A program made the position numbers and the translations under genes. The notes beneath the pieces are model-generated. The model saw only the letters and a list, made by a program, of their open reading frames with translations. It did not search any database and had not been told where the DNA came from. From Takakia lepidozioides (lineage: Eukaryota; Plantae; Bryophyta): 64,000 nt of DNA. The stretch lies in NCBI GenBank assembly GCA_030704615.1, contig CM060731.1:21824001-21888000 (forward strand), given 5' to 3'. Numbering within the stretch: the first letter of the stretch is position 1; each line of letters begins with the position of its first letter. Below are positions 20,806 through 64,000 of the stretch, in pieces.

Positions 20806-21529
20806 TGTCGCACACCTCGATTCGGTAAACTCCCCTTCAAGTCATAGTTACTCGCTTTGATGCGCGCGCCTGACTCCCAACCTGGCCGCCGGGCCAACTT
20901 GGAGTTTCGGCTGCTCACCGGGACATAACGGTCCCCTTCCGCTTCCCTCTAAACCCTCCACCTATTTGGGACTAGGAGAATTCCCTTTGGTAGATGGCAG
21001 TCCGGAACAGCTCCCCACTCTTTGGTCGCTTTCCGGCTCGCTCGCTTACTCACTAGTTTTTGGTCACCAACGGGCTTGCACCGTTCTCGGGGTTACTACT
21101 CCCTATATATACTTCTGTAGCTGTCCGCGGGGGTTTCATAACCAGCCATGCCATTTTATGGCGAACCACCACGAAAACCCTCGACTCCCGGTGGTGAGTC
21201 GCGGTGAGTCTTGGCCCACTCACCGCGGCCCCAATGGACCGTGATGAGTCCCAAGACTCCCCAGGACTCCCACCTCGAGGTCTCCACCCCATGGTGAGTC
21301 CTATGCCACCCCCACTAAGTCCCACTAAGCTACCACCACCCCTTGTGGAGCCACCTACACCGCAACCCGGTGTGCGGGGCTCCACCTAGTGAGCGCCTCT
21401 GCCTCCTTGAGTGCCTTGGGCACTCAAGGGTGCTTCAGCCCCCCATACCTATCGCCGCCGCTGCCCCCACCACAGGGGCAGCCCCTCATGTGTCCCGACC
21501 CCCTGCCCTCAAGGCAAAGGGCCGCGACA
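20806..21529 (-). repeat. 3' LTR of nested Galadriel-like element
   Basis: Direct repeat of 27056-27778; TGTCG...CGACA termini. Confidence 0.95.
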
Positions 21530-22435
21530 CACACCCCTACCAACAGGGAGTCGATGTCCTCATCGACTTGTCCATTTTGTAGAAACGAACATCCAAGTTG
21601 TGGCGTCCCACATCAAGGAGTTTGTTTCCGTACCATGGCGTCCCATGGCAAAGAACCAAACCCCACACTTGACTCCACTCTCCACTAGCTAGTTCGGCCG
21701 ACTTCCTCCAAGTCCCGGCCAAAGGTGGAGCCTCTCCAGCTCCTCCCAGTGCACTCTTCTTGGCCTACTTCAAGGCCAAGGAACGATCCTCCCCGAGGAT
21801 CGAATCGCCTTACTGCAACAACATTGCTTGCGATCGCTCATGATGCCGCTTTTGGCATCACCTTGAGCAAGGGTTCACCTGAAACCCTCTTTGACTAGGA
21901 AGATAACCTTGAACCAACCGTGCGCCCCAATCACTACAATTGGGTCCGCCTTGGAATGCTGGCCTGAGGTACGGGAACACGCCGAAGCCGCACTACGACT
22001 TCGTCCCGAGGCTACACGATTATAGTACGTGAACGGAAGCACGTAGCTTCCGCGTTAGCCCGCACTACAAGGCAACCCCCTCGGTAGCGCAGTTATAGTA
22101 CGCGCACGCGCCAGGTGCGCACTAGCACTTGAACTCCCAAATAAGGCGCAAGTTTCCTTGCCCCTTGGATGGGAGTCACCCGATTTCGGCACTGCGCAAA
22201 CACACGATTAACCCAATTTACCTCTCCCACTTTTGTAAGCTAGCATGCATTCTACACACCAGCCAACCACACCATGCATCACCATTCCAAACACAATAGG
22301 ACGCACAATATTTGGAACCCATTTCCTTTATCACAAATTTTTGTACAATACAAGTTTTTGCAATCGGATTCCTGAGCTAGCTAAACCGGGCTAAGCATGC
22401 ATTTCCTCCCCCACGCTCCAAGGTTGATGTCCCCA

Positions 22436-25400: not shown

Positions 25401-27000
25401 ATTTGGGCGTTTCCGACACTCGTAAAACCTCGCCACCATTCCCACATGGCAGCGTGACTACTCTCTTGCGGCCATCTATGACCGCTCCGGATTTGCTCAA
25501 AAAGGTCATTCCCAAAATGAGATCCACTCCATCGATCTCGCAGATAGTGAAGTTCTCACGTCCCTCCCAACTCCCCAATTGAAGAGGAACATCAAACGCC
25601 AACCTTGTCGCCAACTGAGGTTCTCCTTTGGCAGAGCGCACCTCAATAGAGGCCCCCACGTCACTTGTCGGGAGTCCCAACTTTCGCGCCGCCGCCGGCG
25701 TCATGAAGGAGTGCGACGCTCCTGTGTCCACCAACAACGACACATTAGTTCCGGATATTATCCCATCCACGAACAATAACTGACTCCCTTTTCGTAAGGC
25801 GCCAGTTTCCTGATACAACTCACAAGAAAATTTGCCTACCTTGCAAGTCCTGGCGACCACCGCTTCCACCAAGCGACTGATGGTATCTTCCGACAGCTCC
25901 GTGGTCGCCCGAGTCATGTTCAATTGCCGGGGCTTCGTGCACTTCTTGGCCATGTGCCCGGGCTCCCCGCAATTGAAACACACTCCATCAAAGGTCGCCT
26001 TCTGTCCGCCATAAGTCGCTCCACCCGCTTTTCCTTTCGAAGCACCGGGTGCCGCCTTGACGTGTGAGGGACCTCCCTTCGATTTCCACGTGCCATTTTC
26101 GCCGCGTGGCCTATCCCACTTCTTTTCCGGTCGGGAGGAGTCACCTTCCCGCCGGGTCTTCTTGTGGTTCAGCTCCGTACGGCCTTGTCTCTCACCCCTA
26201 GGGACATCCGAGAAACATTCAGCTCCTCTCAATTGCCTCGTTCAAAGTCTTGGGTGGCTTCTCCTCCAACTTCCGCCTAGCCCATGGGGCCAGTCCCGCC
26301 ACAAAGTTGAAGACCATTTCTGGTTCTGCCATGTCCGCGACTTCGAGCAACAGCACATTGAAAGCCTGGACATACCCCCGAATGTCATCTGTTTGCTTCA
26401 AATTCCTCATCTTGTCCCGGGCAAGCCAGGATGCGTTGAGGGGCACAAACTGTCTCTTCATCAATTCCTTGAACTCACTCCAGTTCAAGGTTTCCGGGCT
26501 TGGGCCTCGGTCGTGAAGGCGTTTCTGCCACCATTGTTGAGCATAGCCCCTCAAATAGGTGGGAGCCACTTCCACCCGATCCTCGTCACTCAACTTGGCC
26601 GCCCGGAAGTACTGCTCTAGCTCCAGGAGCCAGGTGTTGAGTGCCTTCCGTTTCGAACGCCCTCGAAGGTGCCGGGTTCCTTAGGCTTCACCTTAAACTT
26701 TGCCTTGGTGGAAGTGGCATTAGCCGCCTTCAACACGTCTTTCAACGTCCCGCCAAACTGCGCCAACAACCCTTCCCAAAAGGCTGCCGGCATGGGAGGC
26801 ATCTCTTGGTTTGTCGGAGCTCTCAAAGATTCCTCGGGCTCCGACTCCTCGGATTCCTCCCGCTCCTGAGCGGCCTCGTTTTCGGAAACATTAATCGCTT
26901 CCTCAAACGGCCGCCTCGGTGACACGTCGCCCCCATCGGGCTCACCGGGGTCATCATCTTTTGGGCCGTTCCGCTTTCGCTTCGGCTTGCCCGACCCCAT
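22436..27000 (-). pseudogene. gag-pol polyprotein (gag, zinc knuckle, protease, RT, RNaseH, integrase, chromodomain), broken by ~5 frameshifts
   Basis: [14 protein letters not shown]; [11 protein letters not shown]; SPYGAPVLF...CVDYRALN; YIDDILVYS; [12 protein letters not shown]; [10 protein letters not shown]; chromodomain YEVEAILKSR...YLVKWKGY. Confidence 0.92.
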
Positions 27001-27055
27001 GATGAGGCCAATCCCAAGGACGATCGCGTACTGAACTCTAAGCTCTGATACCAAG

Positions 27056-27778
27056 TGTCGCACACCTCGATTCGGTAAACTCCCCTTCAAGTCATAGTTA
27101 CTCGCTTTGATGCGCGCGCCTGACTCCCAACCTGGCCGCCGGGCCAACTTGGAGTTTCGGCTGCTCACCGGGACATAACGGTCCCCTTCCGCTTCCCTCT
27201 AAACCCTCCACCTATTTGGGACTAGGAGAATTCCCTTTGGTAGATGGCAGTCCGGAACAGCTCCCCACTCTTTGGTCGCTTTCCGGCTCGCTCGCTTACT
27301 CACTAGTTTTTGGTCACCAACGGGCTTGCACCGTTCTCGGGTTACTACTCCCTATATATACTTCTGTAGCTGTCCGCGGGGGTTTCATAACCAGCCATGC
27401 CATTTTATGGCGAACCACCACGAAAACCCTCGACTCCCGGTGGTGAGTCGCGGTGAGTCTTGGCCCACTCACCGCGGCCCCAATGGACCGTGATGAGTCC
27501 CAAGACTCCCCACGACTCCCACCTCGAGGTCTCCACCCCATGGTGAGTCCTATGCCACCCCCACTAAGTCCCACTAAGCTACCACCACCCCTTGTGGAGC
27601 CACCTCCACCGCAACCCGGTGTGCGGGGCTCCACCTAGTGAGCGCCTCCGCCTCCTTGAGTGCCTTGGGCACTCAAGGGTGCTTCAGCCCCCCATACCTA
27701 TCGCCGCCGCTGCCCCCACCACAGGGGCAGCCCCTCATGTGTCCCGACCCCTGCCCTCAAGGCAAAGGGCCGACGACA
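27056..27778 (-). repeat. 5' LTR of nested Galadriel-like element
   Basis: Direct repeat of 20806-21529; followed on the - strand by the tRNA-iMet PBS. Confidence 0.95.
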
Positions 27779-29739
27779 GAGATGGCAGCACCAATGAGCC
27801 AACTTCTGAAGAAAGATGCAGTGTTTGCATGGATACCTGAATGTCAACAGGCTTTTGAGGAACTTACATAACAACTACACATGTGCTGATTAATCCTCAC
27901 TGGCAGAAATATTCATGTTCAGTGTGATGCTTCTGGAGAAGCACTAGGAGCACGTGTTAGCCCAAAATGTTACAGGAGGAGGATAGATTCACCTGTGTAC
28001 TATGCTAGCCGATTGATGAACAATGCCGAAAGAAATTATAGCACAACGGAAAGAGAAGCATTGGCAATGATCTATGCAGTGAAGAAATTCAGGCATTACC
28101 TGTTGGCAAGAAGTTTATGTTCTATGTGGATCACCCGGCTATGGATACCTGGTAAACAAACCTTGATAAGCGGAAGAATAACAAGATGGTGATAATCTTG
28201 CACGAGTTGAGTTCGAGGTTGTTTACAAGCCTGGGAGGCTGCATCTTGTGGCGGATCACTTGTCACGATTATCAACAGGAGAACCAGCCACGGGAGTAGA
28301 TGATCAATTACCAGATGCGAGTCTATTTGCAGTGGAGGTGCAGGAAGTGCAGATGACTGGTTAGATTGGCAGTGGCCAATCAGATACTACCCTTGCTCAT
28401 GGTCAGTGCCCACCAAGTTATGGAAAGGAGCAGAGAAAGAGAATTGCTATCAAAGCTCTACCTTACACTATGGTAGGGAGCAGAATGTATAAGCTAGGAC
28501 CAGATGGAGTGCTGAAGCGATGCTTATACCACCATGAAGTTAATAAGTTTTGGAGGAAGTTCATAAAGGAGTGGCAGGAGGTCATTTTGGAGAAGAGATT
28601 ACCAGCAGGAAGATACTACATGCAGGTTACTGGTGGCCTACTTTGTTCAAAGATGTACACAAGTATTGTCAGAGTTGTGATGAATGTCAGAGGCTAGGAC
28701 CTTTGCAGAGATCTGGGAAGATGGCTTTGCATCCTACAATGCCTACGGAACCATTTCAGAAATGGGGACTAGACTTTGTTGGACCAATTAACCACCAACA
28801 AGAATACACAGAAACATGTACATAATTACAGCCACTGATTATACTACGAAGTGGGTGGAAGCTAAAGCTTTGAGGGACAACACAGCCAAGTCCATAGTAA
28901 GGTTCCTGTATGAGAACATACTTACACGATTTGGCTGTCCCTTGGAATTTATCAGTGATCAGAGAAGTCACTTCATTAATGAGACCATTGAATTATTGAC
29001 TAAAGAGTTCATGATTGTGCATAGGAAGAGTACAACATATACCCACAGGGTAATGGGCAGGCAGAGGCTACCAACAAAATTCTATGTACTATCTTGGCTA
29101 AGATAGTCAATGCAAACAGAACGGATTGGGATACAAAGCTGTTGACAGCTTTGTGGTCATACAGGACTTCATATAAAGTCACCACTAAGTATACACCATT
29201 CCAATCAGTTTATGGTATGGAAGCTTTACTTCCAGTGGAATTCCTGTTACCTACCATGAGAACGGAATGGGGAAAGAGAATGGAATTGCAAGATTCAATT
29301 AAGGTCAGGAAACATGAATTATACCATGTGGAAGAAGTACGTGCTAATGCAGCTGATAATATGACCAGAATTCAGATGAAGAGGAAGGAACAGTTTGATG
29401 AAGGCAAGTTAAAGACTTTTAAGACGGGAGATTTGGTTCTCTGGTTGCAGAAGAAGGGAAAGATTAAAGCTTCTAAGCTTAAATCACCATGGAAAGGACC
29501 TTATGTCATACAGAAGATGTATGATAACAACACCGCCATGTTACAAACCATTAACAAAGAGATGCTGGGAAGAGTCAATGCCAATAAGTTGAAGGGGTAC
29601 AGTGGTATCCATGACAAACCATTGCAGCATGATTTGCATGTTGAAACGCAAAAGCAGTCACGGGCTGCGCCAGTGATACCAACGGAGTATGGAGCACTTG
29701 TCGCTAGGCCGAGCATATATGACCAGGGCGGGCAGAACA

Positions 29740-29990
29740 AGCGCGACACAGCCTATCACAGCCCATCAAGGCGCGACACAGCCTATCACAGCCCAGAACG
29801 GCGCAACACAGCCTATCACAGCCCGGCGCGACAGAGCATATCACAGCCTAGCACGGCGCAACACAACCTATCACAACCTACCACAACGTGTCACAGCCTA
29901 TCACAACTTACCACAGTGCATCACAGCCTATCACAGCGTACCACAGTATGACACAGCCTGTCACAGCTCAACACAGCCTACTAGGGTTAC
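29740..29990 (+). repeat. Degenerate tandem repeat array (ACACAGCCTATCACAGCCC-like units) after integrase
   Basis: Repeated GCGCGACACAGCCTATCACAGCCC and TATCACAAC/AGCC units. Confidence 0.85.
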
Positions 29991-30689: not shown

Positions 30690-33600
30690 ATGAAGAGAGT
30701 GAGAGGAATAGAAGAAATCAGGGTGAAGAGCACCACAATCCTGCAGAAACAAACGATTGCTACTCCGCAGGCGGTACAGTTACTGAAGGAGCTGCGATTA
30801 GAAGGATTGCAAAGCAAAGATTGGACATTGCACCATAGGCAGTACATGTTACAATTCTTGCAGAACTTTGAGCCTAGGACAGGAGCAATAACGGTGACGG
30901 GAGTTGAATTAGAAATTACTCCCCTATACCTACATCAATTGTTTGAATTGCCATCAGGTCAGGTGCATGTGGAGGAGCACAGGGCAAGACTGCAAATAGG
31001 GGACTTATTCCAATAAGGGAGTTTCTTTAAAACTCAGGGTTATGCTTATACCAAGGCCGTCTACCCAGGGCTAAGGGAGGTAGGCCAAGTATTGAACGTT
31101 CTGTTTGCCATGAAACAAAACCAACAATATTTGAGCAGATCCTTCACAGAGGAAAATACTCAAAGCCCTGAGAGGGGAAGAGGTAGCATGGGCGGACATA
31201 ATGTACAATGCACTGGTAGAGGAGATGAAAAGATTACAGGGCACTGCCGCAAAGTCTCCTATCATAGTGTCTGGCCCAATCATTGCTCAAATAATTCTTG
31301 ATTCTTGCATACTTGATGCTCGGGAAAGAAAGGAGATAGGAGTGTTTGAGACCGAAACCACTGCAATGGAAGAGCAAGGCTCTTCACACAGTGAGGGTGG
31401 ACTGGCAAGGCAACCCCAGACTAAGAGACAGAGGCAGGAAAAGACTGTAGTGGCGGATCCACTGGCTTCACGAAAACCGCATGATAATGTTTCCCAAGCT
31501 CTTGTGCAGGAAGGGGCACATCAGCACAGAAAGCTGCTATTATTGGAAGCAGGACCTTCAGAGAGGGAAGAGGAAGTTACTTTAGTATTACAGCCATCAC
31601 AGCCAGATCATCGGCTTGTCACAGAGTTACCACAAGTTGTCCATGCAGTTCCACCAGAAATAATTGATTTGGAGAAAGAAGGGTTAGATATTCCCACTAC
31701 AGAACAGGTGGTGGCAGAAATTGAGAAGGGGGACCTTCTCTATGAAAATTCTGGTCTGGTCAGGGAAACAGTGATTCCGGAGGTGCAGCGGTTGTCTAGG
31801 GGAAACCCTGCGGTGCATATAATACACACACATGTGACGGAGGTACCACAGGTAGAATGTCAAGACACTGCAGCACCTGTGACGGATGAAGTGGTTCAGG
31901 AAGAAAATCTGGTGGGGCAATGGCCTGAGTGGTTCGTGAGGCATCACACTGTTGAGGATGAGGGAGAACAGCAGCAAGCTCACCATGATGACCCTCAACA
32001 GGCCATGCTTATGAGTTCCATAAGCATGACACTTAATTTGTTGGGCACTTATTTCAAATCCCATGTTCCAACTTCCCAATTGGCAGCTTTGAGGGAGGAA
32101 CTCAGGAAGGAGTTTGAGGCTCGACTTGCCACTGAGTGTGCAAACAAGGTCGATGAAGAGGTCACTCTCAAGATGCAGCAAGACTTAGAGAGTACAGAAG
32201 CGGCTTTGCAATTGGCCAATGAACAATTAATTGAGGCAGGCCTCGCGCAAGATCAGTTGCACGAAGCACATAAGCAACAGCTATACCAAATGCAGGTGAA
32301 GCATGAAAGCAAGTTGCAAGAAGTGAATGCACTACATACAGAGTTGCAGACAGTGCATGACAGGATGGCCATACAATGTGCTACACTCACAACTACGCTT
32401 GACCAAGCTACAATAGAAATAAACAGTCAAGCGGAAAGATGTACGAAGGCAGAGGCAGAGAATGTTGAGCAAGTGAAACTCATTGTCGATATGAAGAATA
32501 CAATCTGTCGCAATGAGAATACTTTCAAGCAATACAGGCAGGTTGAAGCTGACCAAGAGAGGTACATCCTGGAGTTGCAACAAACGCTCATGGTAAATAG
32601 AAATGAACTCTCTGTGGCTAACAAGGCTTGGAAGGAAGCCAATAATCTGGCTGCTGCCTATGCGAGTTTGGTTGAACCTCATGCAAAGCGCATGGAGGCT
32701 TTACAGCAACAGATAGATGTGTACAGGCTCACAGAGGAGCAGACTCTCAGGGGTGCCACAAGCAACTTGGTGGATAACCACCTTATGCAGGTCTGGTTAG
32801 CACAAGGGCCGGTGGAGGGCAAAGCACCACGAAAGCTCACCCAAAGAGAGATGAATGAGCTCAGACTGCAAGTGCAGAACATTGCCACAACTACTATAGA
32901 CAATGTCTATAGTAGAATAGCGGAGTTACAGGAGGATGTAGACGGCCTGCAGACTCAGGTGGAGGACCTCACTTCAAATATCGACAAGAGAGTCTGTGTA
33001 CCTGAGGAACAGCTGATGGCTTCTTATTTACAAGCGAGAACTTTGGCTTTTCAGTCTTCTTCGCAGGGGGTGCAGGAGATGCCAATGGTACAAGAGCCAG
33101 TGCCACCAACACCACAACAAGTCACTATGCCAGTAGCTGACCCTGTTGTTGCTACAGCCACACCACGGCCACCACAGCCTGAGGTATGGGGGAATGCTGC
33201 TTTTAACCCACCTAAAACTCCAACTGCACGGGAGTACAGTCGGGCTATGATTATGCCCTTCAACCAAATTCCCATTGTGTTGGATTTGGCTTGGAAGGAA
33301 TTTAGTCCTCCGCAGTCATTGGCACATTACTATCAAATCATGCGCATTTGGCTGCCAGTGGCAACTAGGACTAAAGTTCTTCCGAACAATCGACCAATTG
33401 AGGATCATCACTTTGCGCAGTACTGGCATGAGGCAAGTACCATGTTGAAGGAATTAATTGCCTTCCAAGTTGTACATGGATTCATTTATACCAAGACCAA
33501 AGAGGTAGCAAGTATTGTCATGGGCTGCGGGTTATACTACGCTGCTTGTTTTCTGGTACGTTATCACATTGAGCAGCAGAAGATGCAAACGCGCTTTCTG

Positions 33601-34248
33601 AGTTATTCCAGTGGGGATCATTGGGTCTTACCTTCAGTGCCACCTCATATGTACCTATATGAGGCAAAAGTTATGATGCAAAAGGATTCTCAGATTCGTT
33701 CATGGTTTCATGCGGCCTGGAACAATTTGTCAACACAGAAATTCGGCCTTGACGATATTTTCTTTAAGGGACATCAGGCATGGAAATACTTGCACAATTC
33801 ACAAGTCATTGGTACCCCACTCACCTGGACAGACAAGGAGCTCAGGGTCTTCACCAATTTTGCAATTCAGCGCTTACAACAAGTTTTATAGTTTAAACTT
33901 CCGGACATGGTGGGACAACATTGTATGCCCCAGAGAATTCCAGTTAGAGTTCGACAGTTAAAACACCTCAGGGGGGACGAGGATTCTGATACTACTGTTT
34001 CTTCAGCGGACTCTTTTGACATGGTAGAGGACTATGCAATTCAGATGGCAGAGAAGAAGCGACGGGGGTCTCCTATGCCTGAAAGATTACCTCGATATCA
34101 GCCTCCAGAGGGACTGACATATCCAGGTAGTGTTCAATCATCTCCCTCAACCAGTGACAGGACACGGGCTCGCACACGGAGTCCTTCACGAGACTCTAAC
34201 CGTCAGAAGGATGCTCGCTCACAAAGGGTTACAAATCCCAAACAGTAA
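30690..34248 (+). pseudogene. Additional ('env-like') ORF of the Athila-like element, ~1180 aa when repaired; N-terminal plant-transposon-protein-like domain plus long coiled coil
   Basis: ORF pieces 30690-31016, an in-frame continuation to ~31145, 31201-33891 (896 aa) and 33907-34248 are separated by only two in-frame stops and one frameshift. The ORF lies between the integrase and the PPT. Confidence 0.75.
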
Positions 34249-34285: not shown

Positions 34286-35229
34286 TGTTAGAGGACTGTC
34301 TGGGACTTAGGCACTTTTACGGGATCTGTGGGGTACCCTTAATTTTTGCACAGACTGAGACCAACAGGAGCCTTAGGGGTGACAACAGCGCACTTTAGGG
34401 GGGGGGGGGGGGGGGGGTTACATAGCCCGTCACAGCCAACACAGCCCGTCACAGTCCGACACAGCCCGTCACAGTCAACACAGCTCGTCACAGTCTGACA
34501 CAGCCCGTCACAGCCAACACAGCCTGTCACAGTCCAACACAGCCCGTCACAGTCCGACACAGCCGACACAGCCGCCACAGCCAGACACAGCCGTCACAGC
34601 CAGTCACAGTTCGACACAGCCCGTCACAGCCCGACACAGCCGACACAGCCGCCACAGCCAGACACAGCCGTCACAGCCAGTCACAATTCGACACAGCCTG
34701 ACACAGCCCAACACAGTCGCACAGCCAGTCACAGTTTCACACAGCCGGTCACAGCTTGACACAGCTGTCACGACCATAGGGAACGGATAGCAGGACAGTG
34801 AATGACTGTGGGGAACAACATCTGCGAATGGAACATGTTAGTTCACGGATGACGGTTAGTGAGGGAACGGTTAGAACCACGGAAAGGAAGATAAAGCGAG
34901 GAGCGGGGACTGGAGGATCACTTCGGGGGGGATCAAAACTTGGAAATGAAGCGGAGAGCGCATCTCTGAGGAGAAAGAGGGAGAGCACGGAGTAGGAGGA
35001 AAACGATCTGTTGATACTGGCTGAATGCAAGAAGTAGAGTTGTAATGTAGAGCAGAATAGAGACACCATGGCTTCAGCCTGATACTTGATAGATATTAAT
35101 CTGATACATACTTCATACTCACACTGTGTAGAGAGACCTGAGTGAAGCTGTGGAATGAATGGATGGAACTTGATAGATTTCTGAAGCAAACTGATACTTA
35201 ATTGCAGATAGTAAGGTAACTCGCTAACA
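34286..35229 (+). repeat. 3' LTR of Athila-like element (944 bp), containing a G20 run and a CACAGCC repeat array
   Basis: TGTTAG...CTAACA inverted termini; directly preceded by the PPT; poly-G 34398-34417; (GTCACAGCC/GACACAGCC)n 34420-34770. Confidence 0.85.
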
Positions 35230-38200
35230 TGAATGCGGGAAGGAGTACAAATAGGAAACACCCCCATGATACACTAGCTGTAGGTCATGACTGATTGTTC
35301 TGAGCGGGCTGAGTGCTTAGAGATTTCCAACTCTTCTATCTTGGAGTTCCCACCTCGGATAGCGAAGGGATGTGTGAGTAAAAGCCGCGCGACAATATTG
35401 CATTGCGAAACACAATAGGCACAATTATGAAGTCCCGACGGCATGACTTGCACAAGGAATGGCAGAAAGGTGAGGGGAAACCCATGGACGTGTCTGATGA
35501 GCATTGGAAGAGCCTCACCTCCTACCGGAGTACAGAACAGTACTCTAAAGTGCAGACCCACTTGAAGACAACAAATGCCTGCATTCAAAATCACACCAAA
35601 ACGGGCCGGGGAGGGAAGGACAGCATGGAGGCACGCTTAGTAAGAACCCTCATGAGCTTTCTCACTATACTCTTCTCAATACATTCTATGAATGCCAATC
35701 TTTAATGCTGGTTGGCTTATGGTTTAGTACTTCAAGCAATTTTGGAGCTGAGTTTTAATAGAAAATTATTTTTGTGTTGACATGATTGTTCAATCTTGAC
35801 GTTGCATTATCTTGAGTGGTTTTGTTATGGTTTTGTATGGTTGAGCCATTGAGTACAAATTGCACATTGGCTTCATATTGTTTGTTATGTTGGGTAAATA
35901 TGTAGGAAAGAGAAACCGGGTGCCCCCCTACGTTGGCTGATATACAAGAATACTCTGTCTCAAGGATGTCAGCTGGGAGCGATAGGCGGGTAAGTGAGCC
36001 TCAACAACCATGTGCTTTCAGTACATGTGTGCCCTGTGTATTATAGCACGTTTGCTTGCTCAAGTTCTCAGTGAATGATCTAAGTGTTGAAAGAATGTAC
36101 TCATAAGAGTGCCAGTGTGTTGATTGACAAAACTGAGTTTGGTACCTCTAACCACTTCTTGGTTTGGACTAAGATCTGTTGGTTTTGGGTTTGTTGATTT
36201 TCACTATAAGCCAAATTGTATCCCTAGGACGGCCCTGTCTGGCCAGGTCTAAGTCCATCAAGGGGTTTAGTAGAGGGTTAAACACATTTTACTTTAGAAG
36301 TTGCTGGGTGTGATCATTGTATCCCTAGGACTGCATGTGTGGTAGAAGGACCTGTGCCTGAATTTACTGCTTTGCTAGAACAAAAGTGGGACCAATATTT
36401 TTGTACAGGTGAACATGTTGTAGTCATGGTTGCCAGCGTTTGATGAATATGTGTCTGGTTGGTGTGATCACCCAATATGGATTGATAGGTAAGGTGCTTG
36501 ATGTTGTGCTCAAATATTGGCAAGTGGAAATAATCTTGCTGGAACATGTTGTCTTATGCATTTTGGTCTATATGGCAGGAAGCGAGTGTAGCGTATTCTG
36601 CCATAGTCAGAAAGGTGGATGCAATGGAAAAACAAGTCGAGGCTCAAGGGTCTGATATGCTGGAGATGAAATCATGGATGCAGAACATGATGGACTCTCA
36701 GAAGGCAATGATGCTCAAATTGGGGGTTAATGTCCCCCTGGCAGGTCCAGTGACATCTGGCATGAATGGTTCTGGTGTCACTATATCAAAAAGATTGGCG
36801 GAGCGGTTTGAGACCATAACTGGCGATCAATCTCAAGTGTCCCCTAACCCTATCACCGATGATGGTTTGCATCTGTCCAAGCAGTTCGCCATAGGGAAGG
36901 CAGGCACTGAGACAGCAATTTCAAGTCAGCCTGCCTCTGGTACAAAAGAAGCTACTGATCATGATGCCCGTGATATGTCTGAGAAGCCTGGTACACCGGA
37001 TTCAGGTATGCATGATTTCTTGGGGAATTCACATGGGGAGGATGGGACAGATGCTACGACATTTCAATTGGTTGTGCATCCCACTGGGCTGATATGTTGA
37101 AGCCAGATAAGCGTTTACAGTCTCCACCACCTCGCAAGCACTTGCTAGTTTTGGATGTGAATGGATTGCTCTATGAATCCATTCATGTTGCTAAGTGGTC
37201 CAACAACTGTTCCCAAAGGATTTGTGGGGAAGTTGTGTGGGATGAAAATGGTATTTTTGAGACCCAGCTGTATTTCTTGCAAAAGTGTTTTGCACACTTT
37301 GAGGTGGCAGTGTGGTCTTGCTGCAAAGCTCGCAACTTCATTCCGATGGTGGACATTATTTTCAAAGGGCACACTTATAATATTTTCCAGTGGGATGCCC
37401 TTTATTGTGAAGAGCTTAGTGACCCATTGGCTAGGGGGGCTAATGCAAAGCCCATATATTTGAAGAACCTATCAAGAGTGTGGGCAAAGTGGCCAGAATG
37501 GGGTCTTGAAGACACTCTTCTTGTTGATGACACCCCAAGAAAGGCATCAAACAATCCTCCATTTAGTGGGATATAGCCGGAGCCATGGAAAATGCGATCA
37601 TCAGGGCCAAAAGATGGCTATCTACTCGATGTGTTGTGGCCGTTCTTGGAGAGGGCAAGCAAGACTCCTAGTATTCCACAATTTCTGAAGTCTGAGCCTC
37701 TCTTTGGACAACAGCCCTACAATTCTGCTCAATGTAATCGTCAAAAGGTACAACAATGTAATGTAAGTCTGGTCCACATTTGGAATTCTTGGGTTGCTTG
37801 TGAATTGCATGAGTAGTGGGTTTCTCTTGAGTGAGCTATGTAACTAGTGTATTTCAGGTTGTAATGCCACTGAAGAAATTGTAATGGTTTGTGATATAGG
37901 GACCTATGATGAAGCGGCTCCATGTTGTCAACAAGTCAGCATAGGAGCTGGAAAGTAGCCCTCTCAAGTAGTTCTCGCAGCCGCCTGAAAGTCAGCTTGG
38001 TGTAAGTCCATGACCTTGTACTCATCACCCCCACACTACATTCCTTGGATATCTTTTCCAATTTTGTTTATCTGACACTGGAGTGTAGACTACCGTCCTT
38101 CACGTTTGCTGTATCCTTGTGGTCATAGACTCCGCATCCACTGGGAGACCTTTGTGAGGGATTTACTTCAGTTTATTGCCAAAGGTAGGTACAGAAAGTA

Positions 38201-49372: not shown

Positions 49373-49891
49373 TCATAACCAACTTCGGATAAGAGCAGAT
49401 CTGCCACATGATATAGTGTGCAAACAAAAGGTATTAGATGAGTACAAACCTGTCCAGGGAACCCACGGCCAAATGTACTTGGCGGGGCCAGCGTCCAGCT
49501 GTTCTCGATAGAATCCATCGGGTTTCACCCACCAAACGCACTGCCTACATGGCAGAGTGTAAAACCCCCATGGTCCCCTCCACACAGTGAATTTTGCATA
49601 ATGGTTGACCCACATGAACTCACACCAGAATCGTGTGGTACCAAATAAGTTCATGCGAAACTTAAAGTGGAAGTTCTGCCCAGGGTACAGCGGGCTGGTT
49701 CCAAGGTCGTTCTCCTTGGACCAGCAGTGAAGAATAACTGGTTCATCTGCGTTCATGAAGCTGAAGATGTCCACTGACATGACTTCTGTAACATCCCATG
49801 CCTGGCCAGGCATTGCGATCATCGCAACCAGAATGAGGGAAAAGGCCAATATCGAGGTGAACTTGCTCATCTTGTGGTGGTGCCGTGCCAT
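49373..49891 (-). CDS. Secreted S-protein homologue (SPH; plant self-incompatibility S1 family), single exon
   Basis: Signal peptide (FTSILAFSLILVAMIAMPGQA) followed by LHCWSKENDLG...FHFKFRMNLFGTTRFWCEF...CVWWVKPDGFY. Start at 49891 or 49870. Confidence 0.88.
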   Translation of the reverse strand: MARHHHKMSKFTSILAFSLILVAMIAMPGQAWDVTEVMSVDIFSFMNADEPVILHCWSKENDLGTSPLYPGQNFHFKFRMNLFGTTRFWCEFMWVNHYAKFTVWRGPWGFYTLPCRQCVWWVKPDGFYREQLDAGPAKYIWPWVPWTGLYSSNTFCLHTISCGRSALIRSWL

Positions 49892-52099
49892 GACTCCTTC
49901 TGTCCTGCGGGACGAAAGAATGTTAAATTGGTTGTGAGAATCCACTCCAAGGCATGGAATCAAGATCGAGGAGGCCCAACTGAGTTTCGCACAAGATTAA
50001 TTAAGAAGAGGTTTGCAATTTCATGCAGTTGCTCACCCATCGGTTGCTGCTGTGTTAGAAATAACTTCTGAGTTAACATTGACAATGGCCCAACGAGGGA
50101 AAGAAGGTTAGCAATTGGCTTCTTTGAACTCTGCCTCGCTTATCCTGCATGTTATATTCAAGACTACGCCGTAGAGAGTGAGGAAAGCCGGAAATTCCAG
50201 GAAGAAAGACCCAATGAGAAGTCACCTGACCCTTGCAAAGAAAACCTGCTCAACAGGAGGGAGGACTGAAGGATGCTCAGGAACTGCAGCAGAGGCAGGC
50301 CAGCTGCCGCGACCGATCGAGAACAGGGGTAAGGCAGACTTATATAAAACGATCCGTCAGGCGTGGAAGCGGAGATGCTAGATCCTGAATGAAATATCTC
50401 TTCTGGGAGAATATACTTGGACGGAATATAGTTTGGAGAGCATATCGGGCTGCTTGGGCGCAAAGATCGCTCTCGAGACCAAGACACTTACCAACCGGTC
50501 CGGATATCACTCTCCAGCACACACGACTCACTCCTGGACATATTCTAGAGCTGACACACCCTCCTGGAAAGTAATTTACAATGAAAGCTACCAAAGACCA
50601 CTTTGGTGCCAAAAGTAAGATTTCACCTGGTGTCAAGCAGCAGAATGTAGGGGAGGAAAGAATTGTTGCCAACAGATGTTGCAAACCTAGTTTTGTTGGA
50701 CAAAGTTTTGGCCAGCAGGATGTTTGTGGACAAACTAGAAATTTGCCAGTGTCTGGGTTGGCCATGTGGGATACTTGCGCCAATTGACATTACATCATTA
50801 ATTCAATCAATTGACGTTTAGCAAATGCCCATGGCGATCTGGGTGAATATTACAAGAGAAAGCCATTCTCCATTTTCACTACACTGACAATCCTCAGTAG
50901 CTCTAAGTAGCTCGAAACACCATGACAGGATGTGCTCTTGAAAGTGCAGTCACAGCCTTTGGTTGCAACTGTAACACAGATTGTGCAGGCTTGTGGTACA
51001 AAAAGGCCCCTCCATCATCACTGTGTCTTCTTGACTGGTACAAAGCCCTCGGAGTCCATTATGCATTGCCCACAATGAATATGTGGTCGACAAGTATAAC
51101 TGTTGGTCATTACAAACCTTTCACACAGCAACCCCCTCCCTTACATTACTCACCGTGCCCTCCCCACACTTGAGCAAGGGAAGCTACACAGCCACTCTGG
51201 ATCCCATATTGAGGGCGACAGACAATTACACATGAAGTATCAAACATGAGAGGGGGGCTTCCTATTCCTTAATCTCTGTCATAATGCCTTGAGCTGCATG
51301 CCCATTTTCCTGGCAGGAGTTCATGGATGGATACTCACACCTCTAATAATCCCATGTGGCTCTGAATATCCATGCCAAAAGTGAGGAATGGCAGCAAAGG
51401 CTCCGTCCTGCCATGAAGTTGAACCCATGATGTTGGTAGTATGCTGGTAGTGATGACCTTGATGCCATGCTATCTCCCAAAATTCCATGTCGAGACCCAG
51501 TACATCTAGAGTGGGGAAATCCACAGTGCCCACCATACAGAATCCCTGGCTCCATTTACTTGCCTTGCACACTCGACAGTCTTTGCTAGCTTCACAGCAT
51601 CAGATCCAGCAGTAAAGGCAGACAAAGTGGAAGAGTGTCCACACATCAGCACACCCAGATCTTCGACAGTTCCAAGAATATTTGCAACAAAAGCTGACAA
51701 CCTTCTTACTGCATGGATTCAGAGCACACTCATATGAATTTGAAGCAGTGTCCAGGTTCTCAACTCAGATTTTGGTGGAAAATGTCCCATGATAATGCAA
51801 AAATAGGGAGTTTAATAACTCCAACCCAATAAGGGTTCAGGGTAGAATCTGTACCTTAACCATCATGAACATACAACCAAATCAGAGAACAAATTCCTCT
51901 AGATAACAGACTTGCATGGATTTGGCCTGCTTCAAAACAAATGCACACTGAAACCTTGCCTTCAGGATTCAGGGTTACCACTTCCAAATGCCGTTCCTAT
52001 CTTCATGAGGGCAGACTTGCAAGGGAAGTGAACTGTTTGCCTCTTGAGAATCTTGCCACACAGTTCATAAACAAGAAAGTATCGATCCAGGTGATCCAA

Positions 52100-53341
52100 T
52101 CACTTTCCATTTCGCCTAAGATGCAGCAGATCACGAAGATGAATGCGGTCTTGTGGCAAGCCCTCCTGGATGCTCTCCAGTTGTTGAACAATTTCCTCAA
52201 ATCGAGGACGTTTATCCGGATATTCTGACCAGCACTTATTGATCAACTCTTTCATGCCGGAAGGATAGGTCTTTGCCCGTAACACTGGTCGAAGATTTTC
52301 CCTTGCCACAACCTGGGCAGCTTCATAGGCGCCCATATCATCAAAAGGAGCAGTGCCCTCAATCATTTCATACAGAATCATGGCGAAGGAGAAGACATCC
52401 ACACTAGTATCGTAGGGTGCATGCTCAAACACCTCGGGGGCCATATATCGGTAGCTGCCGGTTTCTCCAGTCAGCTTGTAAACTTCGTGCAAATGCTTCA
52501 CCTTGATGAGCTTGCTCAGCCCAAAATCGGCCACCTTCAACTCCATAGATTCATCAAATATTAAATTTCGAGGTTTGAGATCACGATGAATGATGACATT
52601 GGGCCCACTGTGTAAGTAGGTCATCCCTCTGGCCATGTCAAGGGCAAATTTCACTGCGTCCGAGGCTGGCAAAGCTTCTTTCCTTTTAAGAAGGTCATGC
52701 AAATCTCCCGATGCAAGATACTCAGTGACCAACATCATTGGTTGGCGCTCAGTAACCGCTCCAAGAAACTGGACAATGTTAGGATGCCTCACCTTCACCA
52801 ACAATTCCACTTCATGCCTGAAGTCTTTGACCACCGCTCGATCCGTTGAAAGAGATGGCCGAATGGTCTTCACTGCGACCGGTGTGCCTCGCCATGTCGC
52901 CTTCCTTATTTCTCCAAAGGACCCCTTTCCAATGAGAAGGCTATCATTCAGATCTACCTCTGAGGGGTCGATCTCCCAGTCACACTTCTGTGGCAGGGGC
53001 GGAGCGACCGCCACCACATCGCAATGGTTGCCACTGCCTCCAATCAATAGGGCTCCATTCTTTCTGAGCAGCTTGCTCATCTCCTGAAAACCAGCGCCTT
53101 CGGCATCGGCCAGTGGTGAATTGCCCCACCTGTCCTGGGCATTAAGCAAGCACCCATTGGCAACTAAGATCTTAGCAGAGGCAAGGCAGTTGTTGCTAGC
53201 GGCGACATGCAGCGGGGTGCGGTAATCGTAATCGGGAGCATTCACCAAGCTTCTGTCATCTTTCAGCAGCTTCCTGAGATCACCCACTTCCTCATTTCTC
53301 ACAGCCCAGTGCACCTTTGACACCTGGGCTCTGTCCGCCAT
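52100..53341 (-). CDS. Ankyrin-repeat Raf-like protein kinase (VIK/integrin-linked kinase-like), intronless CDS
   Basis: Ankyrin DYDYRTPLHVAA...QDRWGNSPLADA; kinase IGKGSFGEI, VAVK, HRDLKPRN, DFG, TGSYRYMAPE; uninterrupted ORF from ATG 53341. Confidence 0.93.
   Translation of the reverse strand: MADRAQVSKVHWAVRNEEVGDLRKLLKDDRSLVNAPDYDYRTPLHVAASNNCLASAKILVANGCLLNAQDRWGNSPLADAEGAGFQEMSKLLRKNGALLIGGSGNHCDVVAVAPPLPQKCDWEIDPSEVDLNDSLLIGKGSFGEIRKATWRGTPVAVKTIRPSLSTDRAVVKDFRHEVELLVKVRHPNIVQFLGAVTERQPMMLVTEYLASGDLHDLLKRKEALPASDAVKFALDMARGMTYLHSGPNVIIHRDLKPRNLIFDESMELKVADFGLSKLIKVKHLHEVYKLTGETGSYRYMAPEVFEHAPYDTSVDVFSFAMILYEMIEGTAPFDDMGAYEAAQVVARENLRPVLRAKTYPSGMKELINKCWSEYPDKRPRFEEIVQQLESIQEGLPQDRIHLRDLLHLRRNGK

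Positions 53342-57596: not shown

Positions 57597-57638
<42 letters not shown>
57597..57638. repeat. (GA)n microsatellite upstream of the micro-exon gene
   Basis: ~21 GA units. Confidence 0.9.
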
Positions 57639-57642
<4 letters not shown>

Positions 57643-57911
57643 AGGGTTTAGTAGAGAGTTAGAGCGTGCGAGGATAAGCGAGGAAGGCGCGTGGGCCAAT
57701 GAGCACCCGTCATCCCTGACCCGCCGCCCTCAGCCCTAGCCGCTGAGAGAGAGAGAGGGGGGGAAACAGAGAAAGTGGTGTGCGATTGGGAGGGGCTTTG
57801 GGGCGGATCCGGTGGGGTTCGTTTACTGGGGTTTATCTAAGAAGCTGTTGGAAGCTAGTGTTGATGAGCTCTCTTTCTTTTCACGTGTACCGAAGAAGCG
57901 TTGCTAACATC

Positions 57912-58176
57912 ATGGCTGCAAGAGTTTTGGGCGAGCACTGTAAGCAGGTGACAGGGCTGTGTGCCCAGTCTGGTGCTCGAGGGTTAGCGCCAGGGCCGGG
58001 AGGAGCTCTGGGCAAGGGAGATCAGAGTGGGTTTCTTCTGATGAAGACTCGATTGTTCAAAACTGAGTTTCCTCGACTCCGAGGTACCCACATTGTTTCT
58101 CCCCTCCCCTGTGTCTGCAGAAGTGGAGGTGGAGGTGCCCCGCGTAGGTACAATTCTGAGGCACCCGATTGGAGAG

Positions 58177-58219
<43 letters not shown>

Positions 58220-61200
58220 CTCTAGGTTTGTAGGTAACTCTACGTTATTGCTAGTCTCTTTTACGCATGGTTTTTTATGTATTTTCTAACCCAGGTTCTC
58301 TCACCATATGTAGTCAAACATTCTTCACCTTCCAGTTTCGGTGAGGCAGATGCCGACTGTTTTGATTAGTGTTACGTGCTGAGTTCTAACATCATGACCG
58401 AGTCTACTCTAGGTTTAACCTAGACTTGTCCGACATCTGTTTGTATGATTTATTAACAGTGGCCGATTTAAGAGTGTTCACTTCTGAATTTGAAGCTGTG
58501 TAATGTATGTTGGAGTTGAGCCATGCTCTTTTTCTTTGTTGGTTTTAGCAGTAAAGTGGGGTGCTCTAGTAATCAGTACTGAAATCGTAGATCGTGGGCA
58601 TCAGCTTTGGCTTAGGGCAGATTTTCTTTTCCGATTTAATTAGCCTATCCGAAAACACTATGAAGCCAACTTATTGACGCCTATCAGTATAATATTATTG
58701 GAGATGTGGTTCTAGAAAAAATTGAAGTCCTTGACTTTGTCAAGGGACTATGTTGCAGACCCACCCTCTGGAACTGGAAGAGATGGGGATGAGTCTGGAA
58801 AGGAGGGGTCTGGAAGAGAGGGATATCAGTCTGGAAGAGACGGGTATCAGTCTGGAGGAAATGGGTATCAGTCTACTCGTAAGTACCTCTGCTCTGCCTT
58901 TTCACTTTCCATCGTTTTCTAAGTTCCCAACTTCTTTTTTTCAATTGAAAAAACTTGGGCTTGTACAACACTGTCAGGCAGATGTAGCTGGCGGGCAATG
59001 TAGTATGTTGAAAGTGAAAGCTGCTTGCAATTAATTTTCTGTGTTGATAGCTGTTTCTGTTGTTCATACGAATTGATGCATTTAGAGCGGCCTCTACTGT
59101 GGTCTAGTTTATACCATATTGGAACAGCAATGTGGTTTCGTTGTGACAGAGATGAAGACTGAAAGATGCTAGGGGAACCTTAATGTGAGTCATAATGGAT
59201 TTGATTGTTTTTATGTTGCAGGGCCGTCAGCTCCACCTGGAAATCCATATGTTGGTCAGTAAATTTGCTCAGTACCTGTTCAGTGTCCAGTTCTTAAATT
59301 CTGAACTATGTGAGTTCAAGCAGTTTGTCTCAAGTGAAACTGTCGAGGAAGGTTGATGAAGCAGGGTCTGAGTCAAATGTTGTACTAGGGAAGTGTAGTC
59401 CATGGAGGGTGGAAGTTTCCTGTAATCAATTTCAGTTTAACCTCCTTTTTATGTCTTGATTGCTGTCTGGGACGACGCTTCACTCAAATTTGATGTACTG
59501 GGAGTGGCCTCCTTGGTGCTGTTGTTTTTGTTGTATTGGGACAGCAATGTGACCTCCTTTCCGGAGTTGTAGAGGGAAAACTTCTGCGGGAGAGCCTTAT
59601 TAGTGTGGACATTTCTGAGTAAGTTACGGACTTGATTGTTTGTATGTTGCAGGGCCGTCGGCGGCACCTGGAAATCCGTATAAAGGTATGTCTGCTCAAC
59701 TATGTGGCTTTGAACATATTTGTCCCTAATTAAAACTGTTTGGTTTATACATTGTGAGGCAGATAAAGTGTGCCTTTAGTTCAAGTTGTATGAGAACAAT
59801 CTGGTCTGTAGTTTATGTCATACTCCAAACAGCGGTGTAGAGAGGGCTTCTGGGATGACTTATCATCATGGAGCCTTATGAGTAATTTATGATAATGATT
59901 TATGTGTTTCAGGACCATCGGCTGCACCTGGAAATCCATACGTAGGTCAGTATTTTGCTCAATATGTCTTTGCTCTTTGGTTGGAGTTTAAATCGGGGTT
60001 CAGGCGCTTTTTGGGTTCATATAAATTCTTCGCTTGTAACTACGAGGCAGGTGAAGGAAGCTCTCGTTTCTAGTCGTGCTGGTTAACAAGGCTAGTTACG
60101 ATGATGATTATGTGTTGCAGGACCATCGGCTGCACCTGGAAATCCATACGTAGGTCAGTATTTTGCTCAATACGTCTTTGCTCTTTGGTTGGAGTTTAAA
60201 TCGGGGTTCAGGCGCTTTTTGGGTTCATATAAATTCTTCGCTTGTAACTACGAGGCAGGTGAAGGAAGCTCTCGTTTCTAGTCGTGCTGGTTAATGAGGC
60301 TAGTTACGATGATGATTTATGTGTTGCAGGACCATCGGCTGCACCTGGAAATCCATACGTAGGTCAGTATTTTGCTCAATACGTCTTTGCTCGTTGGTTG
60401 GAGTTTAAATCGGGGTTCAGGCGCTTTTTGGGTTCATATAAATTCTTCGCTTGTAACTACGAGGCAGGTGAAGGAAGCTGTCGTTTCTAGTCGTGCTGGT
60501 TAACGAGGCTAGTTACGATGATGATTTATGTGTTGCAGGACCATCGGCTGCACCTGGAAATCCATACGTAGGTCAGTATTTTGCTCAATACATCTTTGCT
60601 CTTTGGTTGGAGTTTAAATCGGGGTTCAGGCGCTTTTGGGTTCATATAAATTGCTTCGCTTGTAACTATGAGGCAGGTGAAGGGAGCTCTTGTTTTAGTC
60701 GTGCTGGTTAACGAGGCTAGTTATGATAATGATTTATGTGTTGCAGGACCATCGGCTTCACCTGGAAATCCATACGTTGGTCAGTATTTTGGTCAATGTC
60801 TTTGCTCTTTGGTTGGAGTTTAAATCGGGGTTCAGGTGCTTTTTGGGTTCATATAAATTGCTTTGCTTGTAACTACGAGGCAGGTGAAGGGAGCTCTTGT
60901 TTCTAGTCGTGCTGGTTAATGAGGCTAGTTGTGATAATGAGTTATGTGTTGCAGGACCATCGGCTGCACCTGGAAATCCATACGTAGGTCAGTATTTTGC
61001 TCAATACGTCTTTGCTCTTTGGTTGGAGTTTAAATCGGGGTTGAGGCGTTTTTGGGGTTCATATAAATTGCTTTGCTTGTAACTACGAGGCAGGTGAAGG
61101 GAGCTCTTGTTTCTAGTCGTGCTGGTTAATGAGGCTAGTTATGATAATGAGTTATGTGTTGCAGGACCATCGGCTGCACCTGGAAATCCATACGTAGGTC

Positions 61201-63894
61201 AGTATTTTGCTCAATACGTCTTTGCTCTTTGGTTGGAGTTTAAATCGGGGTTGAGGCGTTTTTGGGGTTCATATAAATTGCTTTGCTTGTAACTACGAGG
61301 CAGGTGAAGGGAGCTCTTGTTTCTAGTCGTGCTGGTTAATGAGGCTAGTTATGATAATGAGTTATGTGTTGCAGGACCATCGGCTGCACCTGGAAATCCC
61401 TACGTAGGTCAGTATTTTGCTCAATACGTCTTTGCTCTTTGGTTGGAGTTTAAATCGGGGTTGAGGCGTTTTTGGGGTTCATATAAATTGCTTTGCTTCT
61501 AAGCTACGAGGCAGGGAGCTCTTGTTTCTAGTCGTGCTGGTTAACGAGGCTGGAAGTTAACTGGAAGGCCTTGCCAAAGCCTATCCATTTAGAGTGGGCT
61601 CTATTGTGTTCTAGCTTAATGTCATACTAAAGCAGCAATGTGGTCTCCTCTGTTACTCAGGTGTAAAGGGAAAAACCTCAGGGGAAGACTTTGAATTGTG
61701 GAGCTTTGTGACTAAATTATGGATATCTTGGATTTGCATGTTGCAGGACCTTCTGCGTCACCTGGAGGACCTTCCGTCTCACCTGGAAATCCAACATATG
61801 GTTAGTTTCTTTGCCCAGGACCTTGTTGGGGTATTGTTCTTCTTTGTTCAAATACGTGGGTTCCACCTTCTTCTGGCAATGTTTTGTGTCTAAAATCATA
61901 AGGCAGATGAACTGTGCTCCCAGTCAAAGTTGTACTCGAGCAATGTAGTCCGTATTCTATATCTGTTTGTTGACTAGGACACTTCTCTCAATGTTGATCC
62001 ATTAAGAGTGGCCTCTTCTGTATTGTAATTTATGTCAGATTGGGACAGTAATGTGATCTCCTCTCGCAGAGGTGTAGAGGGAAAATGTCTGCTAAAGCCT
62101 TGTTATTGTGGACCAATGCGAGTAAATTATTGACTTGATCGCTTGTATGTTGCAGTACCTTCCGTCTCACCTGGGAATCCATATGTTGGTAAGTTGTTTT
62201 TTCTCAGGACCTTGTTGGTGTATTGTTCTGTTTTGTTGAAATATGTGGTTCAACCTTCTTTTTGCAATGTTTTGTGTTAAAATCGTGAGGCAGATGAACT
62301 GTGCTCAAGTCCAAGTTGTACACGAGCAATGTAGTCTCTAATCTATTTCTGTTCGTTGACTGGGACGCTCCTCTCAAAATTGATCCATTGAGAGTGGCCT
62401 CTTCTGTTTTTTAGTTTATGTCAGATTGGGACAGTAATGTGATCTCCTCTCACAGAGGTGTAGAGTCACAGAGGTGTAGAGGGAAAACGTCTGCTAAAGT
62501 CTTGTTATTGTGGACCTATATGAGTAAATTATTGACTTGATCGCTTGTATACTGCAGTATCTTCCGTTTCACCTGGAAATCCATCCGTTTCGCCTGCAGT
62601 ATCTTCCGTTCCTGTTGGTAAGTTGTTTTTACTCAGGACCTTGTTGGTGTATTGGTCTTTTTTGTTCAAATATGTGGATTCAACTTTCGTTGTGCAATGT
62701 TTTGTGTTAAAATGTTAAAACTATGAGGCAGATGAACTGTGCTCCGAGTCCAAGTTGCACTCGACCAATGTAGTCCCTGATCTAATTTGTTTGTTGACTC
62801 GGACGCTTTTCTCAATGTTGATCCATTAAGAGTGGCCTCTTCTGTATTGTAGTTTACGTCTGATTGGGCCAGCAATGTAGCCCCTGATCTATTTCTGTTC
62901 GTTGACTGGGACTCATCTCTCAAAATTGATACATTAAGATTGGCCTATTCATTATTGTAGCTTATATCAGATTGGGACAATGTGATCCCTTCTCGCAGAG
63001 GTGCAGGGAAAATGTCCCTCGAAGCCTTATTATTGTGGACCGAGTGAATTATTGACTTGATCGTTTGTATGTTGCAGGGCCATCTGCTGCACCTGGAAAT
63101 CCATATAAAGGTCACTGTCTCTGCCCCGGACCTTTTCAATCTATGCTTGTATCTTGGCCAAATTTGTGGCTTCAAGCATATTTCTGCTTCAATTGAATGA
63201 ATTTTATTTGTATGATGAGGCAGATGAATAGTTCGAGTTGTACCAGCGCAATGTACTATATGGAGATTAGGGTTTATTATTTTATTCCCGTGTGTTTTAA
63301 TTTGGAGGCCTCATCGAAATTACTCCATTGAGAGTGGCCTTTATTGTGCTCTTTGTCATGCCGTATTGGAGCATGGGTGTGATCTTTGTCCACAGAAGTG
63401 GAGAGGGAAAGCTTCTGGGGTATTTATCTTAGTGGTCCTGCGTCAGTAAATGATGGACTTTGATTGTTTGTATGTTACAGGGCCATCAGCCGCACCTGGA
63501 AATCCATATAAAGGTTGATATCTTTGCTCAGGAACTTTTCAATTGAAATCTCCAATTTGCACAAATATTTGGCTTGAAGTCTCGTCTTTAAATTATGGAT
63601 TGGTTTAGAGGGGTTTTGTCATCGTGTACCTGTGTGAGTTCAATATGGACCTGATCGGTCGTATGTCACAGGCCCATCAGTTGCACCAGGAAACCCGTAT
63701 AAAGGTCAACTTTTATCCCAGGATATTTTCACTTTAAAGTCTTATTCACCCAAACATGTGGTTTCAAGCATTTTGTAAATTCTTGAGTGAAAACTTCTAG
63801 GGTCTTCATCGTTGTGTACCTGTGTGAGTAAATTCTGGACTTGATTATTTGTCTGATACAGTGCCATCAGCTGCTCCAGGAAATCCATATAAAG
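57912..63894 (+). CDS. Unknown, probably plastid-targeted, low-complexity repeat protein encoded by a micro-exon array (3'-partial). Exons: 57912-58176, 58759-58878, 59222-59254, 59653-59685, 59913-59945, 60121-60153, 60330-60362, 60539-60571, 60747-60779, 60955-60987, 61165-61197, 61375-61407, 61747-61800, 62156-62188, 62558-62617, 63078-63110, 63481-63513, 63672-63704, 63862-63894
   Basis: Every internal exon is bounded by (Y)AG and GT, has a length divisible by 3 and is phase 1-1. The joined frame is stop-free: MAARVLGEH...PCVCRSGGGG..., SGRDGYQ repeats, then (GPSAAPGNPYV/K)n. The gene continues past the window end. Confidence 0.8.
58180..58217. repeat. (CT)n microsatellite at start of intron 1
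   Basis: ~19 CT units directly after the donor GTAC. Confidence 0.9.
59880..61550 (+). repeat. Tandem repeat, ~208-210 bp unit x 8; each unit is one 33-nt exon plus intron
   Basis: Near-identical units GGACCATCGGCTGCACCTGGAAATCCATACGTAGGTCAGTATTTTGCTC... recur with exon starts at 59913, 60121, 60330, 60539, 60747, 60955, 61165 and 61375. Confidence 0.95.
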
Positions 63895-64000
63895 GTCAAT
63901 AGTGCTTCTCATGAACTTTCCACTCCAAATATCCATCTTGCCCCAATATGCGAGTTGAAGCACTTTCTGTAAATGACTAGGGGGAGGCTCCATCTACCCT

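Follow-up and report, generated by a model that had tools for sequence, protein, structure and literature searches.

A plant gene with one conserved repeat unit per micro-exon, grown by duplication of exon-intron cassettes

The window analysed here is a 64-kb stretch of DNA (64,000 nucleotides). Its left end holds the 3′ part of a mitochondrial carrier gene (1-2220, + strand) and a type II H+-pyrophosphatase gene (about 4570-12000+, + strand), both recognised by eye from their exon sequences. Nested Ty3/gypsy fragments, identified from ORF translations, occupy 16685-29951, and one of them carries a chromodomain (22436-26232, − strand). An 896-residue ORF at 31201-33891 (+ strand) lies in a retroelement-rich block, together with decamer repeats at 29741-29980 and 34420-34765; it has a coiled-coil-like middle and no Pfam match, and is perhaps an accessory retroelement ORF. 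Repeat-rich DNA also contains a NIF/FCP1-like phosphatase ORF (37094-37576, + strand; PF03031). An intronless S-protein homologue with a signal-like N-terminus follows at 49373-49963 (− strand; PF05938, E 1.6e-22).

The neighbouring gene at 52100-53341 (− strand) encodes an intronless ankyrin/VIK-type kinase with a best identity of 69%. In an ankyrin-kinase tree it falls within the moss clade (100/99), the base of which is unresolved, and outside the set formed by Sphagnum and the Bryopsida (89/87), a placement that makes an early-diverging moss the likely host. The Sphagnum model of this kinase, P0005 (L002/L003 10001-41796), has a first exon ~30 kb upstream of a compact gene and is likely a misannotation. 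Directly upstream of the gene described below, a magnesium-dependent phosphatase-like gene runs from 53806 to about 57400 (+ strand), with an Acid_PPase match (PF12689) on its first exon.

The gene of interest lies on the + strand. Its 5′ leader (57793-57911) is covered by RNA contigs that extend ~100-107 nt past 57900. Exon 1 (57912-58176, 265 nt) begins with an ATG, encodes 88 residues and ends in phase 1, and exon 2 (58759-58878, 120 nt) is phase 1-1. They are followed by 17 micro-exons, of which 15 measure 33 nt, one 54 nt and one 60 nt. The V-type unit m1 (59222-59254) and the K-type unit m2 (59653-59685) precede a young tandem array of eight cassettes at 59887-61551, m3-m10, in which exons of 33 nt each start at 59913, 60121, 60330, 60539, 60747, 60955, 61165 and 61375 with a period of ~209 nt. 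The 54-nt exon m11 (61747-61800) contains a 21-nt internal duplication, and the 60-nt exon m13 (62558-62617), which lacks Tyr, is separated from it by m12 (62156-62188). The K-type units m14 (63078-63110) and m15 (63481-63513) and the units m16 (63672-63704) and m17 (63862-63894) complete the visible array. The gene continues beyond the window end at 64000, and its C-terminus lies outside the window.

A motif scan of the window places 17 PGNP-coding sites within 59222-63894 on the + strand; only one more exists in the window, at 49454, where no array surrounds it. Chance is excluded, with 16 motif matches against 0.00 expected in 100 shuffles. Joined from the ATG at 57912 onwards, the model reads through 331 codons without a stop, and the remaining two reading frames, with 10 and 11 stops, were rejected. 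Every micro-exon (17/17) has a CAG acceptor and a GT donor and is phase 1-1, and 15 of the 19 exons in the model are symmetric exons of 33 nt. PGNP is encoded in all 17 units and GNPY in 15, the exceptions being m11 (GNPT) and m13 (GNPS). None of the pairwise exon skips computed on the model makes a stop. A first-pass annotation made from the letters alone had proposed this set of exons and splice sites, the same unit counts and a frame that survives the skipping of any subset; the exons and counts are recovered in full, and the frame holds at every pairwise skip junction. A TGA(T/G) element ~20 nt 5′ of the acceptor in all 17 micro-exons is a plausible branch point. Exon 1 is flanked by an inverted pair of simple repeats, (AG)21 at 57597-57638 and (CT)19 at 58180-58217, the latter just past the first donor. 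GA repeats are common at plant promoters.

The exons are expressed and spliced in order into one frame. The sample comprises two public runs from independent studies (2017 and 2021), available as contigs and guessed to be RNA, which hold part of the stretch; the contigs of the runs, X1 and X2, were aligned to 57900-63899. In both runs the main contigs cover mainly exons, including m2, m11 and m13, with little intronic depth. Exons 1 and 2 are joined in both runs, with exactly the four expected letters between the exons in the contig pieces, and the cover of exon 2 is free of mismatches in either run. Joints at the predicted GT..AG sites connect exon 2 to m1, m1 to m2, and m11 through m12, m13 and m14 to m15, and are listed as 58878>59222, 59253>59652, 61799>62155, 62187>62557 and 62616>63077. 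Splicing between the 33-nt units, on which the first-pass annotation depended, is therefore seen at the predicted sites in both runs. Further joints lead from m2 to an m3-type unit (run X2) and from an m3-type unit to m11; the m3-type units are spliced in the RNA, and their single copies are indistinguishable. Apparent skips of 1479, 1801 and 549 nt were rejected as exon skipping, since they span identical exons: m3, m4, m5, m6, m8 and m9 are the same in sequence and collapse in de Bruijn contigs, which makes these joints uninformative. A synonymous C>T change at 58038 is shared by both runs and absent from the assembly, so both runs derive from other plants than the assembly.

Low-depth unspliced contigs are also found in both runs (59467-59807, 60519-60557). 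They are ~91% like the m2 cassette and carry the same variants in the two runs, by which we assign them to a twin cassette outside the window. In run X1 the unit that follows this m2-like twin apparently lacks a GT donor, and is perhaps a decayed cassette or a retained intron.

Purifying selection maintains the repeat peptide. Among the 15 short units, the minimal number of changes is at least 16 synonymous against 5 non-synonymous, where ~28% synonymous would be expected, and the excess has a P of 5e-6 to 3e-5 across transition/transversion ratios of 1-8. The dN/dS is 0.13 among eight non-redundant units and 0.06 when the V/K codon is left aside. Third positions differ at 0.43, near the rate of free intron sites (0.53-0.56), and positions 1 and 2 at 0.10, well below it. 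Both changes in exon length (+21, +27) keep the frame, and 13 of the 17 introns are not multiples of 3. Only ~10 units provide independent evidence, because m3-m6, m8 and m9, six of the 17 exons, do not differ from one another and belong to the young tandem array. Within the unit, P-S and P-G-N-P are invariant and Y is nearly always present; positions 3, 4 and 10 vary. Selection acts on the peptide and not on splicing alone, because a splicing constraint would not selectively spare third positions. The earlier claim of selection on the peptide thus gains a quantitative basis (P ~1e-5), and the comparison of exon with intron divergence, which had been put forward as its test, comes out in its favour.

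The young eight-copy block, taken by itself, behaves differently: changes at 3/33 exon sites and 17/171 intron sites amount to equal variation, on counts that are tiny. Such equality is what an array that was a neutral minisatellite with incidental splice signals would give. That explanation is already largely refuted by the spliced joints in two studies, by the strong synonymous excess among the old units and by the frame-keeping indels, and we regard it as hardly credible.

The unit of duplication is a cassette of exon plus intron, because the introns are mutually homologous. Their identity is 67-92% in BLAST blocks between old cassettes, ~84% among i12-i14 and 93-100% within the young eight-copy block; the first intron is unrelated to the cassette introns. 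Cassette trees and intron homology agree with growth by cassette duplication, as had been suggested from the letters, and the accompanying statement that the older introns had diverged heavily needs qualification, since divergence does go down to 67% identity but homology is still clear. Cassettes of several ages adjoin, as repeated unequal crossing-over would predict. The start of exon 2 is 71% like the start of m1 over 31 nt, and the G-N-G-Y of exon 2 resembles the G-N-P-Y of the unit, a weak hint that the two may be of common origin.

Repeat number or order differs among the assembly, X1 and X2, through splicing or through genomic copy number. Directly after m15 both runs carry a unit that resembles m14 but ends in Val; it does not occur in the window and differs from m16 at 9/33 and from m17 at 7/33 positions. 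Additional units of this kind in the RNA contigs are in keeping with an array that runs on past the window. The unit that precedes m11 in the RNA lacks the variant that marks m10. In a simulation with k=31, two tandem copies of m15 reproduce the 62-nt contig of X1 and its 21-letter side, other orders that were tried do not, and the order of the assembly yields a single piece without breaks; m15 would thus be present twice in tandem in X1, and run X2 passes it once. The peptides and splice sites of m16 and m17 are intact, and neither exon has contig cover in either run, where holes in contigs prove nothing. Exon skipping and copy-number polymorphism are inseparable here, because both runs come from other plants.

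These departures from the assembled order are also what would be cited if regulated skipping were the main point of the gene, with tissues or stresses making isoforms of differing repeat number, in the manner of schistosome micro-exon genes. The frame survives every skip, m16 and m17 are conserved yet missing from both runs, m15 is joined to a unit unlike either of them, and the unit before m11 is not the m10 of the assembly. On the other hand, the joints follow the genomic order for most unique exons, rare forms are lost from contigs, and the plants sampled, as the synonymous variant shows, are not the one assembled. Moreover, skipping of near-identical units would change the length of the protein and not its sequence, and alternative splicing in plants is mainly intron retention (PMC8831610). 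We consider regulated skipping as the main point doubtful. Phase symmetry lets a duplicated exon survive and is no evidence of regulated skipping. The first-pass annotation had envisaged that valency is tuned both by cassette duplication and by skipping; the former stands, whereas for the latter the unique exons, from exon 2 to m2 and from m11 to m15, are found joined in order.

Exon 1 encodes an R/K/S/G/A-rich sequence with few acidic residues, and the first 70 residues comprise 3 acidic, 10 basic and 7 Ser/Thr. A candidate cleavage site lies near C-V-C/R-S (cut at the slash), a motif that we take to recall plastid cleavage sites. The start is transit-peptide-like and probably directs the product to an organelle, the plastid being the likeliest. 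Seven Ser and Thr are few for a typical plastid transit peptide, which counts against plastid targeting. No hydrophobic signal or membrane segment was found, the hydropathy of 11-residue segments within the first 40 residues peaking at 0.78. An in-frame ATG in the transcribed leader (57864-57866), 48 nt upstream and in weak context, would add a Ser/Arg-rich 16-mer and is a possible second start for dual targeting; an added N-terminal stretch of this kind is a pattern known in dual targeting.

Exon 2 encodes Gly/Ser/charged low complexity (30% Gly) with three SG-x-x-GYQ repeats. The repeat region consists of 27% Pro, 16% Gly and 14% Ser (Pro+Gly 43%), is almost uncharged and lacks W, F, I, L, M and C; Tyr recurs at intervals of 11 residues. 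Its longest Pro-free run is 7 residues, and on composition it is predicted to be unable to form a globular domain or helices. The high Pro and Gly content, the single Tyr per unit and the one core per exon would also suit a secreted structural protein of the elastin, resilin or extensin type, or a repeated-core precursor cut into small peptides. The N-terminus shows no signal peptide by the hydropathy given above, dibasic sites are absent from the repeats, Asn is always followed by Pro, Ser-Pro4 blocks are lacking, and no BURP or other maturase domain is in view. The traits of burpitides, orbitides and KEPs (signal, dibasic sites, Pfam matches on exons 1-2) are likewise absent from the visible part, and both readings are very unlikely.

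Exon-by-exon protein searches, made with short pieces and in two cases limited in length, returned no homologue of exons 1 and 2. Searches of Atlas, Pfam, PDB and Rfam gave no match, Pfam being blank on exons 1-2, and a word-indexed database likewise returned no match to exon 1. These blanks carry little weight, because exon 1 is a targeting sequence of a fast-evolving kind, two of the searches were length-limited, and the queries were single exons. Three sets of matches were rejected: two weak bacterial-type matches over 22-35 residues in a full HMMER scan of exon 1, judged to be chance; a tblastn match to exon 1 (E 0.02) that contains a stop and is antisense to the kinase start; and two single bacterial-type matches, without an array, to a one-exon DNA pattern in metagenomes. 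With the neighbouring kinase as a synteny anchor, no counterpart gene was found in Sphagnum, in Ceratodon or on one metagenome contig, and in the literature no paper carries the peptide as a repeat. Judged by these searches, the product is an orphan protein in a plant.

We see about an even chance that the product is a multivalent disordered scaffold, probably of the plastid, in which cassette duplication drives the evolution of valency. The array of this expressed nuclear gene was built by repeated tandem duplication of a 33-nt exon with its intron, most recently in an eight-copy burst, and selection keeps the P-S-x-x-P-G-N-P-Y peptide constant. Exon 1 would target the product to an organelle, with the plastid as the best candidate, where cleavage would leave a disordered chain in which G-N-P-Y would be the recurring sticker, spaced by the P/S/A/G stretch. 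The scaffold may bind many copies of a partner or self-associate into a condensate, and a folded domain past the window end may tether it. Its valency would shift mainly by genomic gain and loss of cassettes through unequal crossing-over, with skipping possible on top. Function, and condensate behaviour with it, is argued from composition alone, and with no homologue found, no function can be transferred. In algae, sticker number tunes a plastid condensate (10.64898/2026.01.27.701992); the analogy explains why repeat count could be a target of selection and is no evidence for the gene itself.

A more ambitious version seems to us improbable: a land-plant scaffold of an organelle condensate, built from Tyr stickers encoded exon by exon, in which genomic cassette number and regulated micro-exon skipping together determine the valency. 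If true, it would amount to a valency dial tuned by splicing, for which plants offer no described example.

The array may instead belong to a known plastid nucleic-acid-binding protein, RHON1-like, as an expanded disordered arm, with the folded domain of the protein past 64000. This is compatible with the scaffold reading and differs from it in the chief role of the protein. In our assessment, the N-terminal part of RHON1 is echoed at the end of exon 1 (V-C-R-S, a Gly run, R-R and P-D-aromatic-R) and in the S-A-A-P-G of the unit, although the resemblance lies between low-complexity stretches; exon 2 is of RG/SY-like low complexity. RHON1 is laid out as a transit peptide, short conserved blocks, an acidic stretch and a C-terminal Rho_N domain, and a Physcomitrella Rho-N protein is also listed, but RHON1 itself is called vascular-plant-specific (PMC3458557). 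Exon-wise searches with the short pieces were blank, and RHON1 (At1g06190), a protein of 401 residues for which Rho_N (PF07498) is defining, has no described repeat array, whereas the moss gene has one. A RHON1-like protein is thus rather unlikely.

Among the closest known systems are EPYC1, CsLinker, PYCO1 and AaPPAP28, disordered repeat proteins of plastid type for which the number of stickers is important. The putative plastid targeting, the disorder and the repeated aromatic motif could even suggest a Rubisco linker of the EPYC1/CsLinker/PYCO1 type, and AaPPAP28 has 90 short repeats (PMC13655443). However, the pyrenoid linkers use helical or W-centred stickers ~50 residues apart, whereas the moss repeat has a period of 11, no W and Pro-free runs too short for a helical sticker, and it does not match the Chlamydomonas motif. 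Pyrenoid linkers belong to pyrenoid-bearing lineages; the host falls in the moss clade, and among land plants pyrenoids are known only in hornworts (PMC13655443). A Rubisco linker is highly improbable.

The gene is real, expressed and under selection, and annotation would likely mask it as a satellite. Its repeat grows exon by exon, as in animal elastic proteins and schistosome MEGs, here in a plant; cassettes of every age adjoin, and repeat number already varies between samples. Should the product be a plastid scaffold, the gene would offer a natural allelic and isoform series for relating sticker number to condensate in a land plant.

Tropoelastin, the PEVK region of titin and collagen encode one low-complexity Pro/Gly repeat per symmetric exon, have grown by exon duplication, and have a physical property set by repeat number. 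The moss gene shares with tropoelastin and PEVK the repeat per symmetric exon, homologous introns, splicing and purifying selection. It has no sequence kinship with these animal proteins, which are extracellular or sarcomeric, and differs from them in belonging to a plant, in its organelle-type N-terminus and in the even spacing of its Tyr residues. In schistosome MEGs the body of the gene is mainly symmetric exons of ≤36 nt that can be removed without frameshift, exon duplication also occurs, and the proteins are host-exposed, with variation tied to immune evasion (PMC8293314). Here, too, the coding region is mostly symmetric exons of ≤36 nt, yet the moss gene is not a MEG: it has no signal peptide, and its near-identical repeats are conserved under purifying selection.

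Limited literature searches found no plant array with one repeat per micro-exon. Plant microexons have been described as coding exons of <51 nt that annotation misses, several of them phase 1 (Yu et al. 2022, PMC8831610). They encode parts of conserved folded domains such as AP2 and invertase, and the word 'tandem' is absent from the text (PMC8831610); the moss micro-exons, in contrast, each encode one unit of a repeat.
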